A stretch of DNA of 64,000 nucleotides from positions 180,433 to 244,432 of the IMG/VR virus record IMGVR_UViG_3300017786_003484; one strand, given 5' to 3'. Position 1 is the first letter of the stretch, and each line of letters begins with the position of its first letter. Below the pieces are notes generated by a model. The model was not told where the DNA came from. It saw nothing but the letters and a program-made list of their open reading frames with translations, and ran no database searches. Shown piece after piece: positions 8,650 to 59,408 of this stretch. The translations under genes were made by a program, and so were the position numbers.

Positions 8650-9219
8650 ATGATTAGAATCACGGCGACTTTTTCATCAATTGTAATAATTTTTTTAGGT
8701 TGGGTATTATTTTCTGCCGTTGCGATTGCGGCTGACCCAATCGTGACTCAATCCACTACTACTTCAAAGGTTACAACTGAAGGTAACCAAAAAACTACAG
8801 TAAAATCTCCTCCTCCATCAGCTATATCTCCTGCAATAACGTCCTCGGGTTCAGACTTATGTACAGTTGGTATTTCTGGTGCAGTACAAACACAAATACT
8901 TGGTATTAGTGGAGGATCAACAGTTCGTGATATGAACTGTGAACGTTTAAAATTATCAAAAACATTATACGATATGGGTATGAAGGTTGCGGCAGTTTCA
9001 ACTTTATGCCAAGATTTTCGGATATTTACAGCAATGAAAATGGCTGGCACTCCTTGCCCATTTGAAGGTAAGATAGGAGATGCGGCTTCTAAACTTTGGG
9101 AAGAACACCCTGAGTTACATCCTAAGAATTTAACTGAAGGGAAAGATGATAACAATGACTTGGTTAAAGGCGCCGTTGGTGGTTTTGGTCTTGCTGGCTT
9201 GCTCTTACTCTTACTCTAA
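8650..9219 (+). CDS. exported Cys-containing membrane-anchored protein
   Basis: Signal peptide, four Cys, C-terminal hydrophobic anchor. Confidence 0.7.
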   Translation: MIRITATFSSIVIIFLGWVLFSAVAIAADPIVTQSTTTSKVTTEGNQKTTVKSPPPSAISPAITSSGSDLCTVGISGAVQTQILGISGGSTVRDMNCERLKLSKTLYDMGMKVAAVSTLCQDFRIFTAMKMAGTPCPFEGKIGDAASKLWEEHPELHPKNLTEGKDDNNDLVKGAVGGFGLAGLLLLLL

Positions 9220-10717
9220 AGCAGACGATCCAGTCGCTATGACTGGGCCAGTAACTGAATATAATATAACTGATGACGGATGGGCTCATGTACCTCTAGA
9301 TTTTACATTTCCGTTTCAGAATGGCTTCTATACATCTGCATTTATGTTTTCAAATGGTGTTGTTGGATTTATTGATCCATCAGTTCAACGAACATATGGC
9401 TTATGTTGTGATGGACAGAATATGTTAGATCCAACTAATACGTCAAATTATATCTATAACAACATTCAAACTAGACCTGGGCTTAATTTTAGTATTTTTG
9501 GGTTACATACAGACTTAATAAAATATTCAGGTAAAGGCGGTAAGTTTTATACTCAAGGAGATGAAAGTGGTATGCGATTCTTCTGGGAAAATATTAGTGA
9601 ATTCGGCCAGCCTAACAATCTCAACACATTTGATGTTGGAATATATCCATCAGGAAATATTCATATACACCACGAAGAAATTAATATAACAAATCATGAT
9701 GTAACAGTTGGTATCTCCGGTAACTTCACAAGTGATGTTGCAAACTATACACATTACTTTTATAAAAGAAGAACCAACGGAGGAGTGTTTTGGAATGGAA
9801 TAGGAGAAAGTCCTATTATAGTACCACAAGGAGGAACATTATGTGAAGCATCACCTATATCGCATACGTTTTGTCCCGGATATGCAACTGCCTTTGCAGA
9901 AGCAGAATATAACAATAGCTGTCTAGCAAACCCACAGTTTGACTCCGGCTGTCCTGGATACCAAACTCCGGTTGAAGTGACTCCAATAGTCGAAACAACT
10001 CCAGTTGATCCAACAGTTATAGAAACACCAGGAGTTGATTCAACAGTAGCAGATGTTATAGCATCTCCAGAGCCAATTGTTATTGCTCCAATTATAGTCC
10101 CAGAAGTTATTATAGAGGCACCAGTAACAGTACAAACAGATACAACTACATCCACACAAGCAGAAGAAATAATTGTACCAGCAACACCAGAGGAAACAGT
10201 TATAGCTGAAGTAGAAGCAGAATTAGCCACAGTAGAAACAGACGACAACGAATCGTCTGACTCTTCAAGCTCGCCAGCGGATAATTCCGAAGAGTCAGAC
10301 GAGCAATCATCTTCAACTCAAGAAAATGATAGCTCAGAAGAAGTAGCAGTAGAAGAATCAACTTCTACTGAAACAGAACAACCAAAAAAGCTCACTAAAA
10401 AAGAACGTAAAGAAAAATCTAAAAGAGATAAGATGAAAAAAATTATAACTAATAAACTTAAAGAATTAGCAAATGATATGGCTAGTGCCGCAACAATAGA
10501 GCAACAACAAGCGGTGCAAGCACAAATTAATGCTTTAATAAATTATGTACCAGGATTTAATGCTTATGGGCAACTAAGTATTCCGGGAGTTTCATTTTAT
10601 ACACCTGAACCATTGTATGTTAACAGGCGTATACCTGAAAATAATCGTGGGCTACTAAACGGTCTTGCAAGTCAAATTCTTCATGAGAAGATGGTAGACA
10701 TGCAATATAAGAAATAG
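9146..10717 (+). CDS. exported protein with nidogen(NIDO)-like N-domain and acidic low-complexity stalk
   Basis: Signal peptide; DDG..VPL.F.FPF..SNGVVGF pattern; CPGY repeats; Pro/Thr/Glu-rich linker. Confidence 0.6.
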   Translation: MITMTWLKAPLVVLVLLACSYSYSKADDPVAMTGPVTEYNITDDGWAHVPLDFTFPFQNGFYTSAFMFSNGVVGFIDPSVQRTYGLCCDGQNMLDPTNTSNYIYNNIQTRPGLNFSIFGLHTDLIKYSGKGGKFYTQGDESGMRFFWENISEFGQPNNLNTFDVGIYPSGNIHIHHEEINITNHDVTVGISGNFTSDVANYTHYFYKRRTNGGVFWNGIGESPIIVPQGGTLCEASPISHTFCPGYATAFAEAEYNNSCLANPQFDSGCPGYQTPVEVTPIVETTPVDPTVIETPGVDSTVADVIASPEPIVIAPIIVPEVIIEAPVTVQTDTTTSTQAEEIIVPATPEETVIAEVEAELATVETDDNESSDSSSSPADNSEESDEQSSSTQENDSSEEVAVEESTSTETEQPKKLTKKERKEKSKRDKMKKIITNKLKELANDMASAATIEQQQAVQAQINALINYVPGFNAYGQLSIPGVSFYTPEPLYVNRRIPENNRGLLNGLASQILHEKMVDMQYKK

Positions 10718-11636: not shown

Positions 11637-11713
11637 GGGCCTGTAGCTCAGCTGGATAGAGCGCCAGTCTACGAAACTGGAAGTCAGGGGTTCGAATCCC
11701 TTCAGGCCCACCA
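11637..11713 (+). tRNA. tRNA-Arg(ACG)
   Basis: Cloverleaf GGGCCTG/CAGGCCC, anticodon arm CCAGT-CTACGAA-ACTGG, GTTCGAATC, encoded CCA. Confidence 0.97.
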
Positions 11714-32986: not shown

Positions 32987-35196
32987 GCGAACAACCTGAT
33001 TCAAACAATCGTATTAACGAAGTAATTGCAAGGGCATTCCAAGAAGCAATATCAAGAGAGCATGAATATGTTACGTTAGAACATATACTACAAGTGATGC
33101 TTGATGAAGATGACATTAGAGATATACTTTCTGATTTACATGCCAATGTGATGTTATTAAAAGATGATGTATCAGACTGGTTAAGAGAACAAGAAGAAAT
33201 CCGTGTTGACGGAATGACAAAGCCTAGAAAAACTGCTTCTATTGAAAGAGCTTTTAATAGAGCCTACACTCAAGCAATTTTCACAGGTAGAGGACACATG
33301 GAGCCTTTAGATTTGCTTATCTCTATTACTGCTGAAAAATCAAGCTATGCAAACTATTTCTTAATGAAGCATGGTATTAGTAAAGATATGCTTCTTGCTT
33401 ATATTACTAGAATCAAAGACGGTAGAAGCAAAGAAAGTAAAGCACAGAAGAAAAGAGATAGTGAAAAGATATTAAAAAAGTTTACTACTAACTTAATTAA
33501 ATCTGCTAAAGAAGAACTTATTGATCCTCTAATAGGCAGAGAGCAAGAAGTATTCTATCTTGCCAAAACATTAAGTCGTAAAAAGAAAAACAATGTTATT
33601 ATGGTTGGTGATCCAGGCGTAGGTAAAACTGCTATTGTTGAAGGACTAGCCGTTGCTATTGAAAAGGATTTAGTACCAGAGATTCTAAAAGGCAAAACTA
33701 TCTATAGTTTAGATATGGGAAGGCTACTAGCAGGAACTAGATTCAGAGGAGACTTTGAAGAACGTATGCAACAGGTGCTTGAAGCATTAGAAGATAGACA
33801 AGATGCTATCTTGTTTATTGATGAAATACACATGATTATGGGTGCTGGTAGTGCTGGCGGTGGTAGCATGGATGTGGCAAATATGTTAAAGCCAGCCTTA
33901 GAAAAAGGCAAACTAAGATGTGTTGGTAGCACAACGTACGAAGAGTTTAGAGAGAATTTCGAATCTGACAGAGCATTACTAAGACGTTTTACTAAAGTAG
34001 ATATTGTAGAGCCAACTGCAGAAGAAACAAAGTTAATGTTAAGACAAGTTATTCCGTTGTACAGTAAGTATCACAACATAGGATGCAATGAAACAGTTAT
34101 TGATACAGCCGTAGATTTATCAATGAAGTTTATGTTAGATAAGAAACTTCCTGATAAAGCTATTGACATCTTAGATGCTGGTATGGCTAGAATAAAAGTA
34201 CAGGCTAATGATGAAAAAGAAATGACATTAGATCATATTAGACAAGAAATCTCAGACTTAACTCGTATACCAATTGAACAGTTAGGTGAACATAAAGATG
34301 TGGCTGTTAACGATTTAGAAAGTATCATGAGAACACAAGTTTTTGGACAAGACGAAGCTATTGATACTATAATGAATGCTGTTTATATTGCAAACTCAGG
34401 GCTTAAAGAAGTTGACAGACCAATGGGGAATTTTCTCTTTGTAGGACCAACAGGTACTGGTAAAACAGAATTATGTTTACAACTTGCAGAAGGAATGGGC
34501 ATGGAACTAGTTAGGTTTGATATGAGCGAGTATAAAGAAGCACATAAGATATCAGCTTTAATTGGATCACCTCCTGGTTACGTTGGTTATGCTGAAGGTA
34601 AAGCAGGATCAGGTAAACTTGTTAACGAATTAGAACGTGTACCTAATTGTGTATTGCTGTTTGATGAGATTGAAAAAGCCCATCCAGATGTTATTCAAGT
34701 ATTACTTGGCTTAATGGATAGTGGACTTATTACAGGATCAGATAACAAACAAGTATCAGGTCGTAATGCATTTGTTATTATGACTTCTAACCTTGGTGCT
34801 AGAGATTCTGAAAAATCTATGATTGGATTTGGAGATACCAAAAATGATTCAGCAACTGATACAGCAGTCAAAAACTTCTTTGCTCCAGAGTTTAGAAACA
34901 GACTTGATTCTGTTGTTAAGTTTAATAGATTAGATAAAACTATTGTTCGAAGGATTGCTGATAAGTTTATGACTCAGATCAGAATACAAATGAAAGAGAA
35001 TGGAAACAATCTAATTTATACTGACAAGGTTCTTGATTATATTGCTTCAGAAGGATTCAGTGATACAATGGGTGCCAGACCTATGAAGAGATTAATCGAT
35101 AAAGAAATTAAGTTAGACATTGCAAAATCAATTATTAAAACTAAGAAAAAAGATCATACAGTTGACGTTTTAAATGGAAGATTAATGGTAAAATAA
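32983..35196 (+). CDS. clpA: ATP-dependent Clp protease ATPase subunit ClpA
   Basis: Clp N-domain, GDPGVGKT and GPTGTGKT Walker A motifs, RFDMSEY, IGF loop, no M-domain. Confidence 0.93.
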   Translation: MSEQPDSNNRINEVIARAFQEAISREHEYVTLEHILQVMLDEDDIRDILSDLHANVMLLKDDVSDWLREQEEIRVDGMTKPRKTASIERAFNRAYTQAIFTGRGHMEPLDLLISITAEKSSYANYFLMKHGISKDMLLAYITRIKDGRSKESKAQKKRDSEKILKKFTTNLIKSAKEELIDPLIGREQEVFYLAKTLSRKKKNNVIMVGDPGVGKTAIVEGLAVAIEKDLVPEILKGKTIYSLDMGRLLAGTRFRGDFEERMQQVLEALEDRQDAILFIDEIHMIMGAGSAGGGSMDVANMLKPALEKGKLRCVGSTTYEEFRENFESDRALLRRFTKVDIVEPTAEETKLMLRQVIPLYSKYHNIGCNETVIDTAVDLSMKFMLDKKLPDKAIDILDAGMARIKVQANDEKEMTLDHIRQEISDLTRIPIEQLGEHKDVAVNDLESIMRTQVFGQDEAIDTIMNAVYIANSGLKEVDRPMGNFLFVGPTGTGKTELCLQLAEGMGMELVRFDMSEYKEAHKISALIGSPPGYVGYAEGKAGSGKLVNELERVPNCVLLFDEIEKAHPDVIQVLLGLMDSGLITGSDNKQVSGRNAFVIMTSNLGARDSEKSMIGFGDTKNDSATDTAVKNFFAPEFRNRLDSVVKFNRLDKTIVRRIADKFMTQIRIQMKENGNNLIYTDKVLDYIASEGFSDTMGARPMKRLIDKEIKLDIAKSIIKTKKKDHTVDVLNGRLMVK

Positions 35197-55893: not shown

Positions 55894-55980
55894 GCGAGCA
55901 TGGCGGAATAGGTAGACGCAACGGACTTAAAATCCGTTATCAATTATGGTGTGTGGGTTCGAGTCCCTCTGCTCGCACCA
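55894..55980 (+). tRNA. tRNA-Leu(TAA)
   Basis: GCGAGCA/TGCTCGC acceptor, ACGGA-CTTAAAA-TCCGT, long variable arm, encoded CCA. Confidence 0.96.
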
Positions 55981-55982
55981 AC

Positions 55983-56057
55983 TGGCGTATAGTTCAATGG
56001 TAGAACCGACCGCTCATAACGGTCTTGTTGGGAGTTCGATTCTCTCTGCGCCAACCA
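55983..56057 (+). tRNA. tRNA with CAT anticodon (Ile2-lysidine or elongator Met)
   Basis: TGGCGTA/TGCGCCA, GACCG-CTCATAA-CGGTC, encoded CCA; lacks the initiator GGG/CCC stem. Confidence 0.92.
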
Positions 56058-56063
56058 ACCTTT

Positions 56064-56882
56064 TTATATAAATTCAACTCTATCAAATATAAATGAGTCT
56101 TTATATCTGAGACTAAATTCTTTGAATTGGTCACTCTCAACATATCCAATAGGAAATTCATAAGGTATATTAGTCATATTATAAGATTTAATCCAATCTT
56201 TAAATTGTGTTGACTTGTATATCTTTTTTCTGTTATCATTTAAATCAATAAAGAATCCACCAAAAGAACCTAACCTTCCTGTACAATCATCTTGTGTAGG
56301 ATCATCATTTTCTATAAATGATTGAAGTACACATTTACCTAAGATAGATTGATCTAGTAAAACTAAATTTTGTCGATTCATATCTGGATATCCGTAATTC
56401 AACTGTTGATCTTCTTTAGAAAATTGCAACCAAGTAGAACGATTGCTTTGTCCTCGATTAACATTAAAATGTATATTAGTTGGAATATTTTCTTCATAAA
56501 ATATACTATTTTGGCCTGGTGTAGTATAACATTCTAATCTGTGTACTGATTCATTTATTTGATTGATCATTTCAAAGTCTAGTATTCTAAAATTAGAAGT
56601 AAAATATCTGTGAAGCATGTTGAGGGTTGTCTGATTAAAATCAAATCTGTCTGGAACATTTAAGTTCGAGTTAAGAATAGTTAGAGCTTGTAATATATTG
56701 TTCCAATGTTCTGTGATTTTGCTTTCGTCTGGTTCCTGCTTTTTGAAAGTTTCTATTATATCATATCTATAATAAGATCTATGCATTTTCTTAAAATGAT
56801 CAAACCATTTTTTAACTGCTGGTTTGTCAAATAGTTTTACTTCTATTTGTTTATTATTCTTAAATATCATCTTGAGTTTCAT
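56064..56882 (-). CDS. hypothetical protein
   Basis: Q..LN.LH.YF..IN..VH.LE motif; start moved to ATG 56882 (TAAATA-N5-ATG). Confidence 0.7.
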   Translation of the reverse strand: MKLKMIFKNNKQIEVKLFDKPAVKKWFDHFKKMHRSYYRYDIIETFKKQEPDESKITEHWNNILQALTILNSNLNVPDRFDFNQTTLNMLHRYFTSNFRILDFEMINQINESVHRLECYTTPGQNSIFYEENIPTNIHFNVNRGQSNRSTWLQFSKEDQQLNYGYPDMNRQNLVLLDQSILGKCVLQSFIENDDPTQDDCTGRLGSFGGFFIDLNDNRKKIYKSTQFKDWIKSYNMTNIPYEFPIGYVESDQFKEFSLRYKDSFIFDRVEFI

Positions 56883-56930
56883 ATCAATATTTAACGTTTT
56901 TAAATGAAAGAGCAACAGTTAAATAGTTGG

Positions 56931-57018
56931 ATGGTAAATAAAAGCATACACAAGTAATTCGCAAGTTGGGAGAAGGCGCCAACACGTTCGTCTAGTTTAA
57001 AACTAGGCGGTTTTTTTT
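56931..57018 (+). ncRNA. candidate small RNA / micro-ORF transcript
   Basis: TAAATA 56920-56925, 8-codon ORF, GTTGG/CCAAC hairpin, strong terminator. Confidence 0.5.
56989..57018 (+). terminator. intrinsic terminator
   Basis: CGTCTAGTT-TAA-AACTAGGCG followed by T8. Confidence 0.85.
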
Positions 57019-57037
57019 GACTTTTTTTCCAGAAAAA

Positions 57038-57092
57038 GGTTGACCTTTGGACCAACCCATGCTATATTATAAAGACAATAAGGAATTAGGAG
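57038..57092 (+). promoter_or_regulatory. sigma70-type early promoter plus conserved leader
   Basis: TTGACC 57040-57045, N17, TATATT, ATAAGGAATTAGGAG 57078-57092. Confidence 0.85.
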
Positions 57093-57101
57093 AAATACTA
57101 A

Positions 57102-57350
57102 ATGATTAATCCAATTGCAAAAACCGAATATGAAGATGGTGTTATTTGTGCCCAGTTAGAAATACACGAAGGTTTGGATGCAGACTGTATTGAGTTGATC
57201 GAAGACTACATCAATGATGCAGATAAGAAGATGACTAACGGATACAAGAATGCCGCTGGTACTATCTTGAACGATCATTTAGATTTTAATAAAGGATATT
57301 TTGAGACACTTGTTCCTCACTATATCAAATCAAAAGGGGAGAATGTATAA
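57102..57350 (+). CDS. small early hypothetical protein
   Basis: Follows the promoter cassette. Confidence 0.7.
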   Translation: MINPIAKTEYEDGVICAQLEIHEGLDADCIELIEDYINDADKKMTNGYKNAAGTILNDHLDFNKGYFETLVPHYIKSKGENV

Positions 57351-57530
57351 ATGATACCTAAAGCACCAAATGTTAAATTTGAAGTCTTCTTAGTTAATTT
57401 TGGCTATGTATGCGGAGCAACTGATACCTTAGAGAAAGCTATCAAGCTGGCTAAGAAAACAGGTTTTCAGTGTAACATTTTCAAATCAAATGATCCATTT
57501 ACTCCGATTAAATGGGTTTCTCCTGTATGA
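57351..57530 (+). CDS. 59 aa protein (not in ORF track)
   Basis: MIPKAPNVKFEVFLVNFGY...; GGGGAG SD. Confidence 0.65.
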   Translation: MIPKAPNVKFEVFLVNFGYVCGATDTLEKAIKLAKKTGFQCNIFKSNDPFTPIKWVSPV

Positions 57531-57628
57531 AGCTCTATCCGTTGAAAGATATTTGTTTGGCTACAGTAATTGTTATTGTAGTCGTATTTGGTCAAGACAT
57601 CATCACCTACTTAGGGAGATTTGTATGA
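57527..57628 (+). CDS. 33 aa membrane peptide (not in ORF track)
   Basis: ATGA overlaps at both ends. Confidence 0.5.
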   Translation: MKLYPLKDICLATVIVIVVVFGQDIITYLGRFV

Positions 57629-58029
57629 CAATGCATTTAGTTGGTCCTTATATGACCACAACAGTTTATAGTCGTAAGAAAAGTAAGCCTAAGAAGAAAA
57701 CACAGGCTCAACTTCAGTCTGAGGCTAAACACGAAAAGTATCTGCGAAAGATGGGTGTTCATCCTGATCAAAGGAAAGAAGTACAAAATAAGTTTAATAA
57801 AGGGGATAAGTGTTACGGTAGCACGGCTGGCTCCAACCCAGTAAGAGAGGGTTCAATTCCTTCATCCTCTGCCAATTCTTTGTTCTATGATAAAAGTATG
57901 GCTAAGCCTGCACCTAAAGTTTATACAGGTACAGAGATTGTTGGAATTGCTGTCATGCATAAATCTAATGCCGTTCCTATTAGAGGAAAGAAACAAGCTG
58001 AAGAAATAGCTAGAATGCGGAGAGGCTAA
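57625..58029 (+). CDS. conserved basic phage protein containing a nested tRNA
   Basis: MTMHLVGPY.TT..HEK.L..MGVHPDQ N-part and YTG....GIA.MHKSNAVP....A.EIA.MRRG C-part; GGGAG SD before ATG 57625. Confidence 0.8.
   Translation: MTMHLVGPYMTTTVYSRKKSKPKKKTQAQLQSEAKHEKYLRKMGVHPDQRKEVQNKFNKGDKCYGSTAGSNPVREGSIPSSSANSLFYDKSMAKPAPKVYTGTEIVGIAVMHKSNAVPIRGKKQAEEIARMRRG
57801..57874 (+). tRNA. tRNA-Trp(CCA), nested in CDS 57625-58029
   Basis: AGGGGAT/ATCCTCT acceptor, GTGT/GCAC D-stem, GCTGG-CTCCAAC-CCAGT, GAGGG-TTCAATT-CCTTC, G73 plus CCA; atypical A8/U14. Confidence 0.85.
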
Positions 58030-58670
58030 TGAAGGCTGAAATTCTAGCAAAGAATATTGCAAACGGAAGTGGCGGCCACGGGCTTAAACAAAAGATACTT
58101 GAACAAATCTTTTCTCAGCACGAAGACAAACTTGATGACTTATGTTATACTTTTCAAAAAGTAATTTCACTAAGTGGATCTGATTATTTTAGTACACAAG
58201 ATATCTCTATTGGTGAGCCTCTATCAAGTGACTTTACAGAATGGCATCACATTGATGCCAAGCACGATGCATCTTGGGGATTCAGTAAAAAAGATGCTGG
58301 GTGTTACATATACGGATATTTTCCTTTAAGTAAACCCAAAGGTCCTGCAGACTTTCTTGGCAATGAAGTTATTTACATAGGTGAAAGCAGAGCGGTAAGT
58401 AGAAACTGTATGTTAGGTAGACGCACAGACTTTAAAGGCACTATTCGAAATGAACGCCTTAGCCCTTATGGCTGTGGTACTGCATTTAAAAATAACTATA
58501 AAATTGAGGATCTTGATAATTGTTACCAAGCATATCTTCCAATGCATAGTAGTCTGGTTAAGTCATATGAAATGAGATTGTTGTCAGAGTATTATAAGAA
58601 ATATAAGAAGGTACCTTTATGTAATCCAGCTAATGATTTACATAGAGTTAAATTGTTAACAGATGTATAG
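58029..58670 (+). CDS. GIY-YIG-like nuclease domain protein
   Basis: GCYIY..VIYIGES..R..E..LL..Y...Y...P.CN. Confidence 0.6.
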   Translation: MKAEILAKNIANGSGGHGLKQKILEQIFSQHEDKLDDLCYTFQKVISLSGSDYFSTQDISIGEPLSSDFTEWHHIDAKHDASWGFSKKDAGCYIYGYFPLSKPKGPADFLGNEVIYIGESRAVSRNCMLGRRTDFKGTIRNERLSPYGCGTAFKNNYKIEDLDNCYQAYLPMHSSLVKSYEMRLLSEYYKKYKKVPLCNPANDLHRVKLLTDV

Positions 58671-59160
58671 AGTAACCGCTTACTTTAAGAATCATAAAGT
58701 CACACAAAAATTTTATGACCTATATGATGCAATTGATTGGAGAGATGTTGCAGATGCACATTATCCCAATAAAGTCACATTTGAAAAGGAGAGTTCTGTG
58801 AGAGAATTTATTTACAACAGTTGGAATGGTGTTATGAATGCTGATGTTAGTCCACTAAAGCACATTAAAGATTTACAGGTTAGGCATATGGTTTTGCAAA
58901 TACTGGCTTGGATGTGGTGTATTACATTTGCTATGATAGTTGGTAGTTGGACCGTGTTTGGTATTAGTGCAGTAAGTCACCTTTTACTACTAGCGGCTAT
59001 TGCAATTACTGTAGGAACATTTGAAACCGCAAAACGTAAACCTGATGCTTTTACTTTTGTTAAAGGATATCATAGCGGAGGACGAAGCAGAGGTGCAGTT
59101 TGGGTAGATGGTAAAAAGATTAATCTTCCTAAAGGTGATCCGGGTGGTGAACACGAGTAA
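58663..59160 (+). CDS. membrane protein
   Basis: W..VMN...PL.HI..RH..LQ.LAWMWC, two TMs, GGEHE end. Confidence 0.75.
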   Translation: MYRVTAYFKNHKVTQKFYDLYDAIDWRDVADAHYPNKVTFEKESSVREFIYNSWNGVMNADVSPLKHIKDLQVRHMVLQILAWMWCITFAMIVGSWTVFGISAVSHLLLLAAIAITVGTFETAKRKPDAFTFVKGYHSGGRSRGAVWVDGKKINLPKGDPGGEHE

Positions 59161-59408
59161 TGAAAACAATAATCCATATCAATAAGAATCTTAAACAATC
59201 AGATGATAAGCATGGATTAGATAGACCTGTTTGTCGTGTGGAAGTAAAAGGTGAAACTTGGTATGGATCAGCAGTTGATATTGAAGGGCCTAGTAAAATG
59301 GTTTATAGGCCAAACAATCCAAGAGCATGTGGTGCTAAGTTATGGATTGAAACAGAAGCAGAAGTTATTATTCACGATAAAGTAAAGTATAGTGAAATAA
59401 ATAGATAA
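59160..59408 (+). CDS. conserved small phage protein
   Basis: IHIN..V.I.GPS..VY.P..CGAKLWIET. Confidence 0.75.
   Translation: MKTIIHINKNLKQSDDKHGLDRPVCRVEVKGETWYGSAVDIEGPSKMVYRPNNPRACGAKLWIETEAEVIIHDKVKYSEINR

Follow-up and report, generated by a model that had tools for sequence, protein, structure and literature searches.

Can one stretch of phage DNA serve both as a tRNA gene and as part of a protein-coding gene? We examined this question at a locus in a 64,000-nucleotide window (36% G+C) of the 244-kb IMG/VR contig UViG_3300017786_003484, to which window positions 56125-59271 are identical. An earlier note, made from the sequence alone, had described a complete tRNA-Trp lying in frame within a protein-coding gene, and this observation proved correct. 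On the + strand, an open frame runs from an ATG at 57625 to a TAA at 58027-58029 and encodes 134 amino acids, with a Shine-Dalgarno-like AGGGAGA at 57613-57619, 5 nt before the start codon. An ORF listing extends the same frame to an upstream ATG at 57490, but homologues start at M[TS]MHL, which supports 57625 as the start. ARAGORN places a 74-nt tRNA-Trp gene at 57801-57874 on the same strand, with anticodon CCA at 57833-57835 and an encoded 3' CCA. The candidate scores 51.1 bits against the Rfam tRNA model RF00005 (gathering score 29, E 3.6e-9), and its minimum-free-energy fold is the cloverleaf, with all four stems intact. The anticodon CCA, A1-U72 and G73, which form the E. coli TrpRS identity set, can all be read from the sequence, although charging was not assayed and no RNA data from infected cells were looked at. 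The other three tRNAs of the window (Arg 11637, Leu 55894, Met 55983) are intergenic, and one region of the window resembles the ClpA-like genes of jumbo phages.

The tRNA is translated in the ORF as part of residues 59-84, and the translated segment KGDKCYGSTAGSNPVREGSIPSSSA is as the earlier note gave it. tRNA position 1 is the third base of codon 59, so that positions 8-10 (57808-57810) form the codon AAG; a canonical U8 would make an in-frame TAG here. The partner of A8 is U14, at 57814, as the note had stated. Of the three frames, only the one used by the ORF is stop-free across this tRNA. Among the conserved tertiary nucleotides, G18G19, the TTC T-loop, U33 and A37 are present, whereas the 8-14 pair is swapped and positions 15 and 48 are an A15/A48 combination. 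In the first 80 stretches returned by a D-arm pattern scan of viral contigs for either 8/14 combination, only A8/U14 or U8/A14 was seen; this strict covariation argues that the pair still forms, but it is not the canonical state, and the tertiary signature therefore does not settle the matter either way.

The ORF belongs to a large phage protein family of unknown function. It matches phrog_27048 end to end (residues 1-133 against profile positions 1-127 of 127, E 4.4e-18), and a database search found 1229 homologues. The family shares two conserved blocks separated by a variable centre: an N block with MHLxGPYxTTT, a basic run and then HEKYLRKMGVHPDQR, and a C block with YDxSMAK..VYTGxEIxGIAxMHKSNAVP..A.EIA.MRRG. 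In the window the N block (MTMHLVGPYMTTT..basic run..HEKYLRKMGVHPDQR) occupies 57625-57771 and the C block (YDKSMAK..VYTGTEIVGIAVMHKSNAVPIRGKKQAEEIARMRRG) occupies 57886-58026. Delftia phage PhiW-14 gp114, which matches the profile at 7e-68, has both blocks in one 131-aa ORF with no tRNA, indicating that the blocks are parts of one protein. An AlphaFold2 model (pTM 0.27) predicts helices in the N block (residues 27-59) and a beta hairpin plus a helix in the C block; the linker is predicted to be disordered, with pLDDT below 50 in the tRNA-coded residues 61-73. Searches of Pfam, NCBIfam, PADLOC and PDB sequences gave no hit for the protein, Foldseek found no match to the model in the PDB and the ESM Atlas gave no informative neighbour, so that the reason for the association with tRNAs is unexplained. 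The neighbouring ORFs are also unannotated, including the next one (58029-58670, + strand, 213 aa), which has no PHROG or Pfam hit and whose ATG overlaps the TAA of the host ORF by one base (TAATG).

The variable centres of many homologues read like translated tRNAs. To examine this at the DNA level, we retrieved loci with the whole-protein alignment from viral contigs, with the C block alone from metagenomes and with the N block alone from viral contigs; the last two selections do not depend on ORF continuity. Each scan kept its best 80 hits, so badly degraded genes would be missed. Of 172 unique homologous ORFs, 66 carry one to three ARAGORN tRNAs in the linker, 97 tRNAs in all, every one on the coding strand, stop-free and in frame. 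The tRNAs are of eight anticodon types (Trp, Arg-UCU, Pro-UGG, Ile-UAU, Met, Ala-UGC, Thr-UGU and Leu-UAA) and fall into 15 tRNA-bearing arrangements: Trp; Arg; Pro; Arg+Pro; Arg+Ile+Pro; Arg+Met; Ile; Met; Ala; Ala+Thr; Ala+Leu+Thr; Thr; Trp+Ile; Met+Trp+Ile; and Trp+Ile+Pro. Near-identical genes differ by whole in-frame units, as in the family members P0020 (Trp), P0016 (Trp+Ile), P0038 (Ile) and P0029 (Met+Trp+Ile). At least 15 changes of arrangement are needed to account for the 16 linker states seen (these 15 plus the tRNA-free linker), and parsimony suggests 37, on a tree that is built on 88 residues and is weak; because the loci are phylogenetically related, the counts overstate the number of independent events. 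Every change kept the phase. Among cultured phages, only the four strains of Methylophilales phage Melnitz were found to have the arrangement, with tRNA-Trp inside a 147-aa annotated CDS; the Melnitz paper lists the tRNA but does not mention the nesting. The tRNAs of Pelagibacter phage Mosig are intergenic.

The earlier note had proposed that its reading would fall if homologues showed the two blocks as separate genes or carried stops within the tRNA. No homologue has the two blocks as separate genes: all 132 loci in which both blocks were detected have them in one ORF, and 47 of those carry tRNAs. Across these 47 loci the linkers hold 0 stops in the ORF frame, against 76 and 172 in the other two frames. 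All 31 tRNA-bearing loci of the sample selected by the N block alone also keep the ORF open through the tRNA to a C-terminal block, although in 14 of them this is a Melnitz-type block that our search queries did not detect and that was recognised by eye. The only exceptions are three short contigs, L283 and, from two separate samples, L284 and L285, in which the N block and tRNA(s) are followed by a stop with no C block; the fused protein is therefore dispensable in some lineages. For comparison, control tRNAs elsewhere in the same loci are open in only about 0.28 of frames, and in 1.05 Mb of unrelated phage contig stretches only 16 of 730 tRNAs (2.2%) have 30 or more open codons on both sides, most of them by read-through of neighbouring tRNAs.

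We next asked whether both readings of the locus are under selection. In tRNA-bearing genes, pN/pS is 0.086 for the N block and 0.069 for the C block, with a strong third-position excess, indicating strong purifying selection on both flanks; differences inside the tRNA segments show no such periodicity. Between the last tRNA and the first downstream Met lies a conserved YDxS whose Ser switches between TCN and AGY codons among relatives. This is protein-level conservation in a segment that can only be reached by ribosomes coming through the tRNA, and it indicates translation arriving from upstream, although translation through the tRNA is inferred only from sequence conservation and no expression data of any kind were examined. 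The nested tRNAs in turn keep their stems. Sixteen nested Pro sequences are 98.2% paired, with changes on both sides at 14 of 21 pairs, and ten nested Trp sequences are 98.1% paired, with such compensatory changes at 9 of 21 pairs, a result that none of 500 shuffles reached. Nested arrays score 60-70 Rfam bits. Two relatives carry decayed tRNAs that remain in frame: L084, with a Trp-like segment that scores 27.4 bits, is not called by ARAGORN and has mismatches in three stems, and L008, with a Pro-like segment at 30.8 bits. The ORF therefore outlives the tRNA.

Is the unusual A8:U14 pair an adaptation to nesting? A8 and U14 are invariant in the ten nested Trp copies, and A8 is needed for this frame to be open. 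However, the 80 stretches of the D-arm scan held 29 A8:U14 tRNA-Trp genes, of which 27 lie outside this gene and several have in-frame stops. In cellular genomes the motif is rare, with 36 tRNA-Trp hits in 185,579 species genomes, none of them nested. The pair is thus a trait of a wider phage tRNA-Trp lineage that mostly occurs outside this gene; it permits nesting rather than being shown to result from it. Arg-UCU gives a sharper signal. Among tRNAs sharing an identical 28-nt anticodon arm, all 21 nested copies are a 78-nt form with one extra D-loop base (GGA-N-Y-AGAGC), which moves the D-loop TAG out of frame. The 79 non-nested copies of 77 nt or less (GGATAGAGC) nearly all have stops in all three frames, about 8 keeping one frame open, and only 3 non-nested copies are the 78-nt form. 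This fits a filter for open-frame variants and may also reflect adaptation; shared descent of the nested copies prevents a firm choice between the two. We also considered an attenuation-like feedback in which codons read by the nested tRNA would be enriched in the host ORF, and this was not supported: AGA, ATA and TGG are instead rarer in the flanks of ORFs bearing Arg, Ile or Trp tRNAs, a comparison that is confounded by phylogeny.

Taken together, these data are best explained by a dual-coding tRNA host gene, a reading to which we give a probability of about 0.7. In this view, a small phage protein has two conserved parts joined by a disordered linker that tolerates almost any sequence, and in the window the linker is occupied by a tRNA-Trp gene. 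The gene is probably transcribed with its neighbours from an upstream promoter. A promoter-like site (TTGACC, 17 nt, TATATT, preceded by TG) lies at 57040-57068 on the + strand, ahead of the gene string that starts at 57102, and the scan found no comparable site between it and the tRNA; this evidence is weak, as the number of sites found does not exceed the shuffled expectation. The inference of co-transcription with neighbouring genes also rests on the next ORF, whose start overlaps the stop codon (TAATG). Each transcript could then follow one of two routes. Ribosomes that start at 57625 would read straight through the tRNA sequence as about 25 linker residues and make the full 134-aa protein, or the cloverleaf would fold and host RNase P and 3' trimming enzymes would release tRNA-Trp, whose CCA end is already encoded, cutting the mRNA between the two blocks. 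Selection would act on both products, so that only tRNAs or tRNA variants with an open frame can reside there and unit lengths must keep the two blocks in phase. tRNAs would enter, swap and decay at this site over time, with exchange probably occurring by recombination between the conserved flanks, in a genome region that often holds the phage's tRNA cluster. What the sequences themselves demonstrate is the anatomy of the locus and the evolutionary constraint on tRNA structure, on both protein blocks and on frame continuity; co-transcription, RNase P processing, the mutual exclusivity of the two products and any regulatory use of their competition are our inferences. The interpretation in the earlier note is thus partly supported: dual coding holds, as does its alternative of a tRNA captured as a linker, given the decayed in-frame tRNAs, whereas A8/U14 is not supported as an adaptation to nesting and the protein-versus-tRNA switch was not put to a test, no transcript, tRNA or peptide data having been consulted.

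An unlikely alternative is that two polypeptides are made. tRNA processing would always cut the transcript, the N block being made from the truncated, stop-less 5' piece and the C block from the 3' piece, starting at an in-frame ATG (Met92, 57898-57900) that lies 23 nt after the tRNA 3' end; the open frame would be a tolerated by-product, or would only keep ribosomes moving for coupling to downstream genes. A Met at this SMAK position occurs in 35 of 48 tRNA-bearing unique ORFs, 16-49 nt after the last tRNA, and in only 3 of 78 tRNA-free ones, so that the C block could also be made separately, although the use of this Met as a start is inference. The contigs with only the N block and tRNA, and the stop-less and leaderless products that Mukai 2021 proposed for selB-selC (PMC8124441), are in line with such a scheme. 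However, 13 tRNA-bearing ORFs lack that Met (for example YDPSSAKK in the loci L089 and L109), the YDxS just upstream of it is conserved at the protein level with Ser codon-family switches, tRNA-free homologues are single proteins, and frame and phase are kept across at least 15 arrangements, which separate products would not require.

It is less likely still that the tRNA of the window is a non-functional relic serving only as linker sequence in an ordinary protein gene. The relics in L084 and L008 and the non-canonical A8:U14 and A15/A48 of the window tRNA speak for this, but its score, intact stems, conserved loop nucleotides, encoded CCA and Trp identity elements speak against it, as do the strict covariation of the 8-14 pair, the compensatory changes in the nested Trp lineage and the relative L083, which differs from it by one change that turns a G-U into an A-U pair. 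A chance or annotation artefact, in which gene callers fuse a tRNA and two small flanking genes into one ORF, is already contradicted by the comparative data and retains only a remote probability. About 68% of phage tRNAs are open in at least one frame, and tRNA arrays can read open for about 100 codons by chance, but the 2.2% background contrasts with every locus in the samples selected by either block, 0 stops in the ORF frame contrast with 248 in the other two, and the two blocks are one protein in tRNA-free members. Nor are the loci near-identical copies of one genome, as block identities run from 34 to 100%. Splicing-like excision and religation was rejected because the tRNA lengths of 74-78 nt are mostly not multiples of 3 while the frame is conserved with the tRNA included. 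Translational bypass as in phage T4 gene 60, also a phage gene interrupted by a structured non-protein segment between two conserved coding parts, needs a stop after the take-off codon and matched take-off and landing codons, and its gap need not be open; here there are no stops to bypass in any of the 47 tRNA-bearing linkers, and plain read-through suffices.

The closest precedent is selC (tRNA-Sec) nested in the selB ORF of Alphaproteobacteria, a bioinformatic prediction (Mukai 2021, PMC8124441) and the single predicted case of a nested tRNA in a bacterial ORF. There too, an entire tRNA lies on the coding strand inside an uninterrupted ORF, is translated as extra residues and is conserved across relatives, remnant tRNAs are kept in frame in some lineages, and folding and processing of the tRNA is proposed to preclude the full-length protein. 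In selB, however, the tRNA forms a C-terminal extension with no conserved protein part after it, and it is always one species, the ligand of the host protein. The present tRNAs lie between two conserved blocks, so that read-through is needed to join them; they are general elongator species of eight types, up to three per gene, with frequent in-frame turnover; the hosts are phages, and no link between the protein and tRNA function is known. The tRNA-Lys within mitochondrial cox1 of Armadillidium vulgare (Doublet 2015, as cited in PMC8124441) is likewise fully integrated in a coding region in direct orientation, with alternative processing proposed, but it is a single case in an extremely compact organelle genome with reduced tRNAs, whereas the tRNAs here are full-size and, the swapped 8-14 pair of the Trp copies aside, canonical, at a recurrent, exchangeable insertion point in a protein family. 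In tRNA-mRNA co-transcripts separated by RNase P, such as the E. coli tufB operon and the phage T4 tRNA cluster, tRNAs also depend on a promoter shared with protein genes and are released by host processing enzymes, but they lie between or ahead of coding regions, so processing does not destroy an ORF. Rickettsia palindromic elements are structured-RNA-forming DNA inserted in frame at permissive sites, translated as extra residues and polymorphic in presence among homologues; they have no known RNA function, whereas the inserts here are tRNA genes under selection for the cloverleaf. Literature searches found no description of the phage arrangement.

A more speculative possibility, which we hold only tentatively, is that the nesting is a regulatory device and not merely a tolerated insertion. 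Ribosome traffic on the host ORF would set how often the cloverleaf can fold and be cut out, so that tRNA output would rise when translation initiation or elongation falls and the dose of the host protein would fall as tRNAs are made. This would couple the phage's tRNA supply to the state of the translation apparatus during infection. The conserved N and C blocks would double as a portable expression and recombination cassette, through which phages trade tRNA genes in frame.

tRNA genes and protein genes are normally treated as mutually exclusive, and annotation rules usually forbid a CDS that overlaps a tRNA, so genes like this one are likely to be deleted or split in phage annotations. In this family, the same nucleotides appear to be selected both as a cloverleaf and as an open reading frame in dozens of diverged phages, many of them aquatic, and the tRNA content turns over while the frame is preserved. 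This extends the selB-selC precedent to an internal position that requires read-through, to arrays of several tRNAs and to general elongator species. One cultured phage-host pair, Melnitz on OM43 strain H5P1, carries the same arrangement, so that the idea can be tested directly. The locus is a natural system for asking how ribosomes and RNase P compete for one RNA and how much tRNA sequence a protein linker can absorb, and it also suggests a route by which phages acquire and exchange tRNAs.

A swapped 8-14 tertiary pair (A8:U14) is the usual state in one widespread phage tRNA-Trp lineage. Among the viral contig stretches examined (L163-L242, the first 80 returned by the D-arm scan; for example L165, L167, and L184), 29 of the 33 Trp genes that share this D-arm carried the swapped pair, which also occurs in a few Gln, Gly, and Pro tRNAs. 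No A8/A14 or U8/U14 combinations were seen. The motif is rare in cellular genomes (contigs L487 onward); a search of 185,579 species genomes gave 36 Trp hits, mostly in metagenome-assembled genomes.

Examination of the host-gene loci at the DNA level also identified a 92-nt element that ARAGORN calls tRNA-Ile(UAU), present at L130:283-374, L091:904-995, and L281:1836-1927. The element has a long extra arm and an odd D region and is nested in frame beside normal tRNAs. Rfam gives it only a sub-threshold tRNA-Sec-like score (31.5 bits), so it may be an atypical tRNA-like RNA, whereas a 96-nt Ile(UAU) form at another locus (L090:1313-1408) scores 60.9 bits as tRNA. Decayed tRNA relics were found in two further loci, a Trp-like segment of 27.4 bits at L084:1416-1486 and a Pro-like segment of 30.8 bits at L008:750-826. 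Neither is called by ARAGORN, and both remain in frame as linker in otherwise intact host ORFs.

The host family also varies in its C-terminal part. At least three C-block types could be distinguished (loci L311, L325-L335, L356, and L001, the last being Melnitz; and L392 and L459), namely MHKSNAVP..MRRG, GQAYNKGGLQVLS..TGKRR, and APAYNKGPYQVISKS..IGR, and all three types host tRNAs. Truncated variants at L283:230-595, L284:372-641, and L285:83-352 have the N block plus Trp (plus Pro in L283) followed by a stop, with no C block downstream. L284 and L285 come from different samples, so this is unlikely to be an assembly error. As for the gene neighborhood, an HNH endonuclease gene (L281:786-1337) lies just upstream of one three-tRNA host gene, and a serine hydroxymethyltransferase gene lies downstream in two loci (L281:2085-3227 and L282:1451-2590). 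tRNA-free members often have tRNA clusters within 3 kb, as in loci L058, L062, L082, and L064.

A long ORF across tRNAs is not in itself evidence of coding, because ordinary phage tRNA arrays can be stop-free for about 100-140 codons purely by chance, as seen in the viral contig stretches L256 (positions 8908-9382), L215, L205, and L184. In another such stretch, a tRNA-Trp (L236:3029-3102) lies in frame directly ahead of a 274-codon ORF that looks like a D-alanyl-D-alanine carboxypeptidase with a signal peptide. No Met lies between the tRNA and the signal peptide; this arrangement may be due to chance, or an alternative start codon may be used.

The window belongs to a 244-kb viral contig, and a ClpA-like ATPase region at window positions 33577-34687 resembles genes of jumbo phages (GAP32, RaK2 group). 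The other tRNAs of the window, Leu-UAA and Met-CAU located 2 nt apart at 55894-56057 and Arg-ACG located 6 nt after a stop codon at 11637-11713, are all intergenic. Thus, nesting is specific to the Trp gene in this genome.
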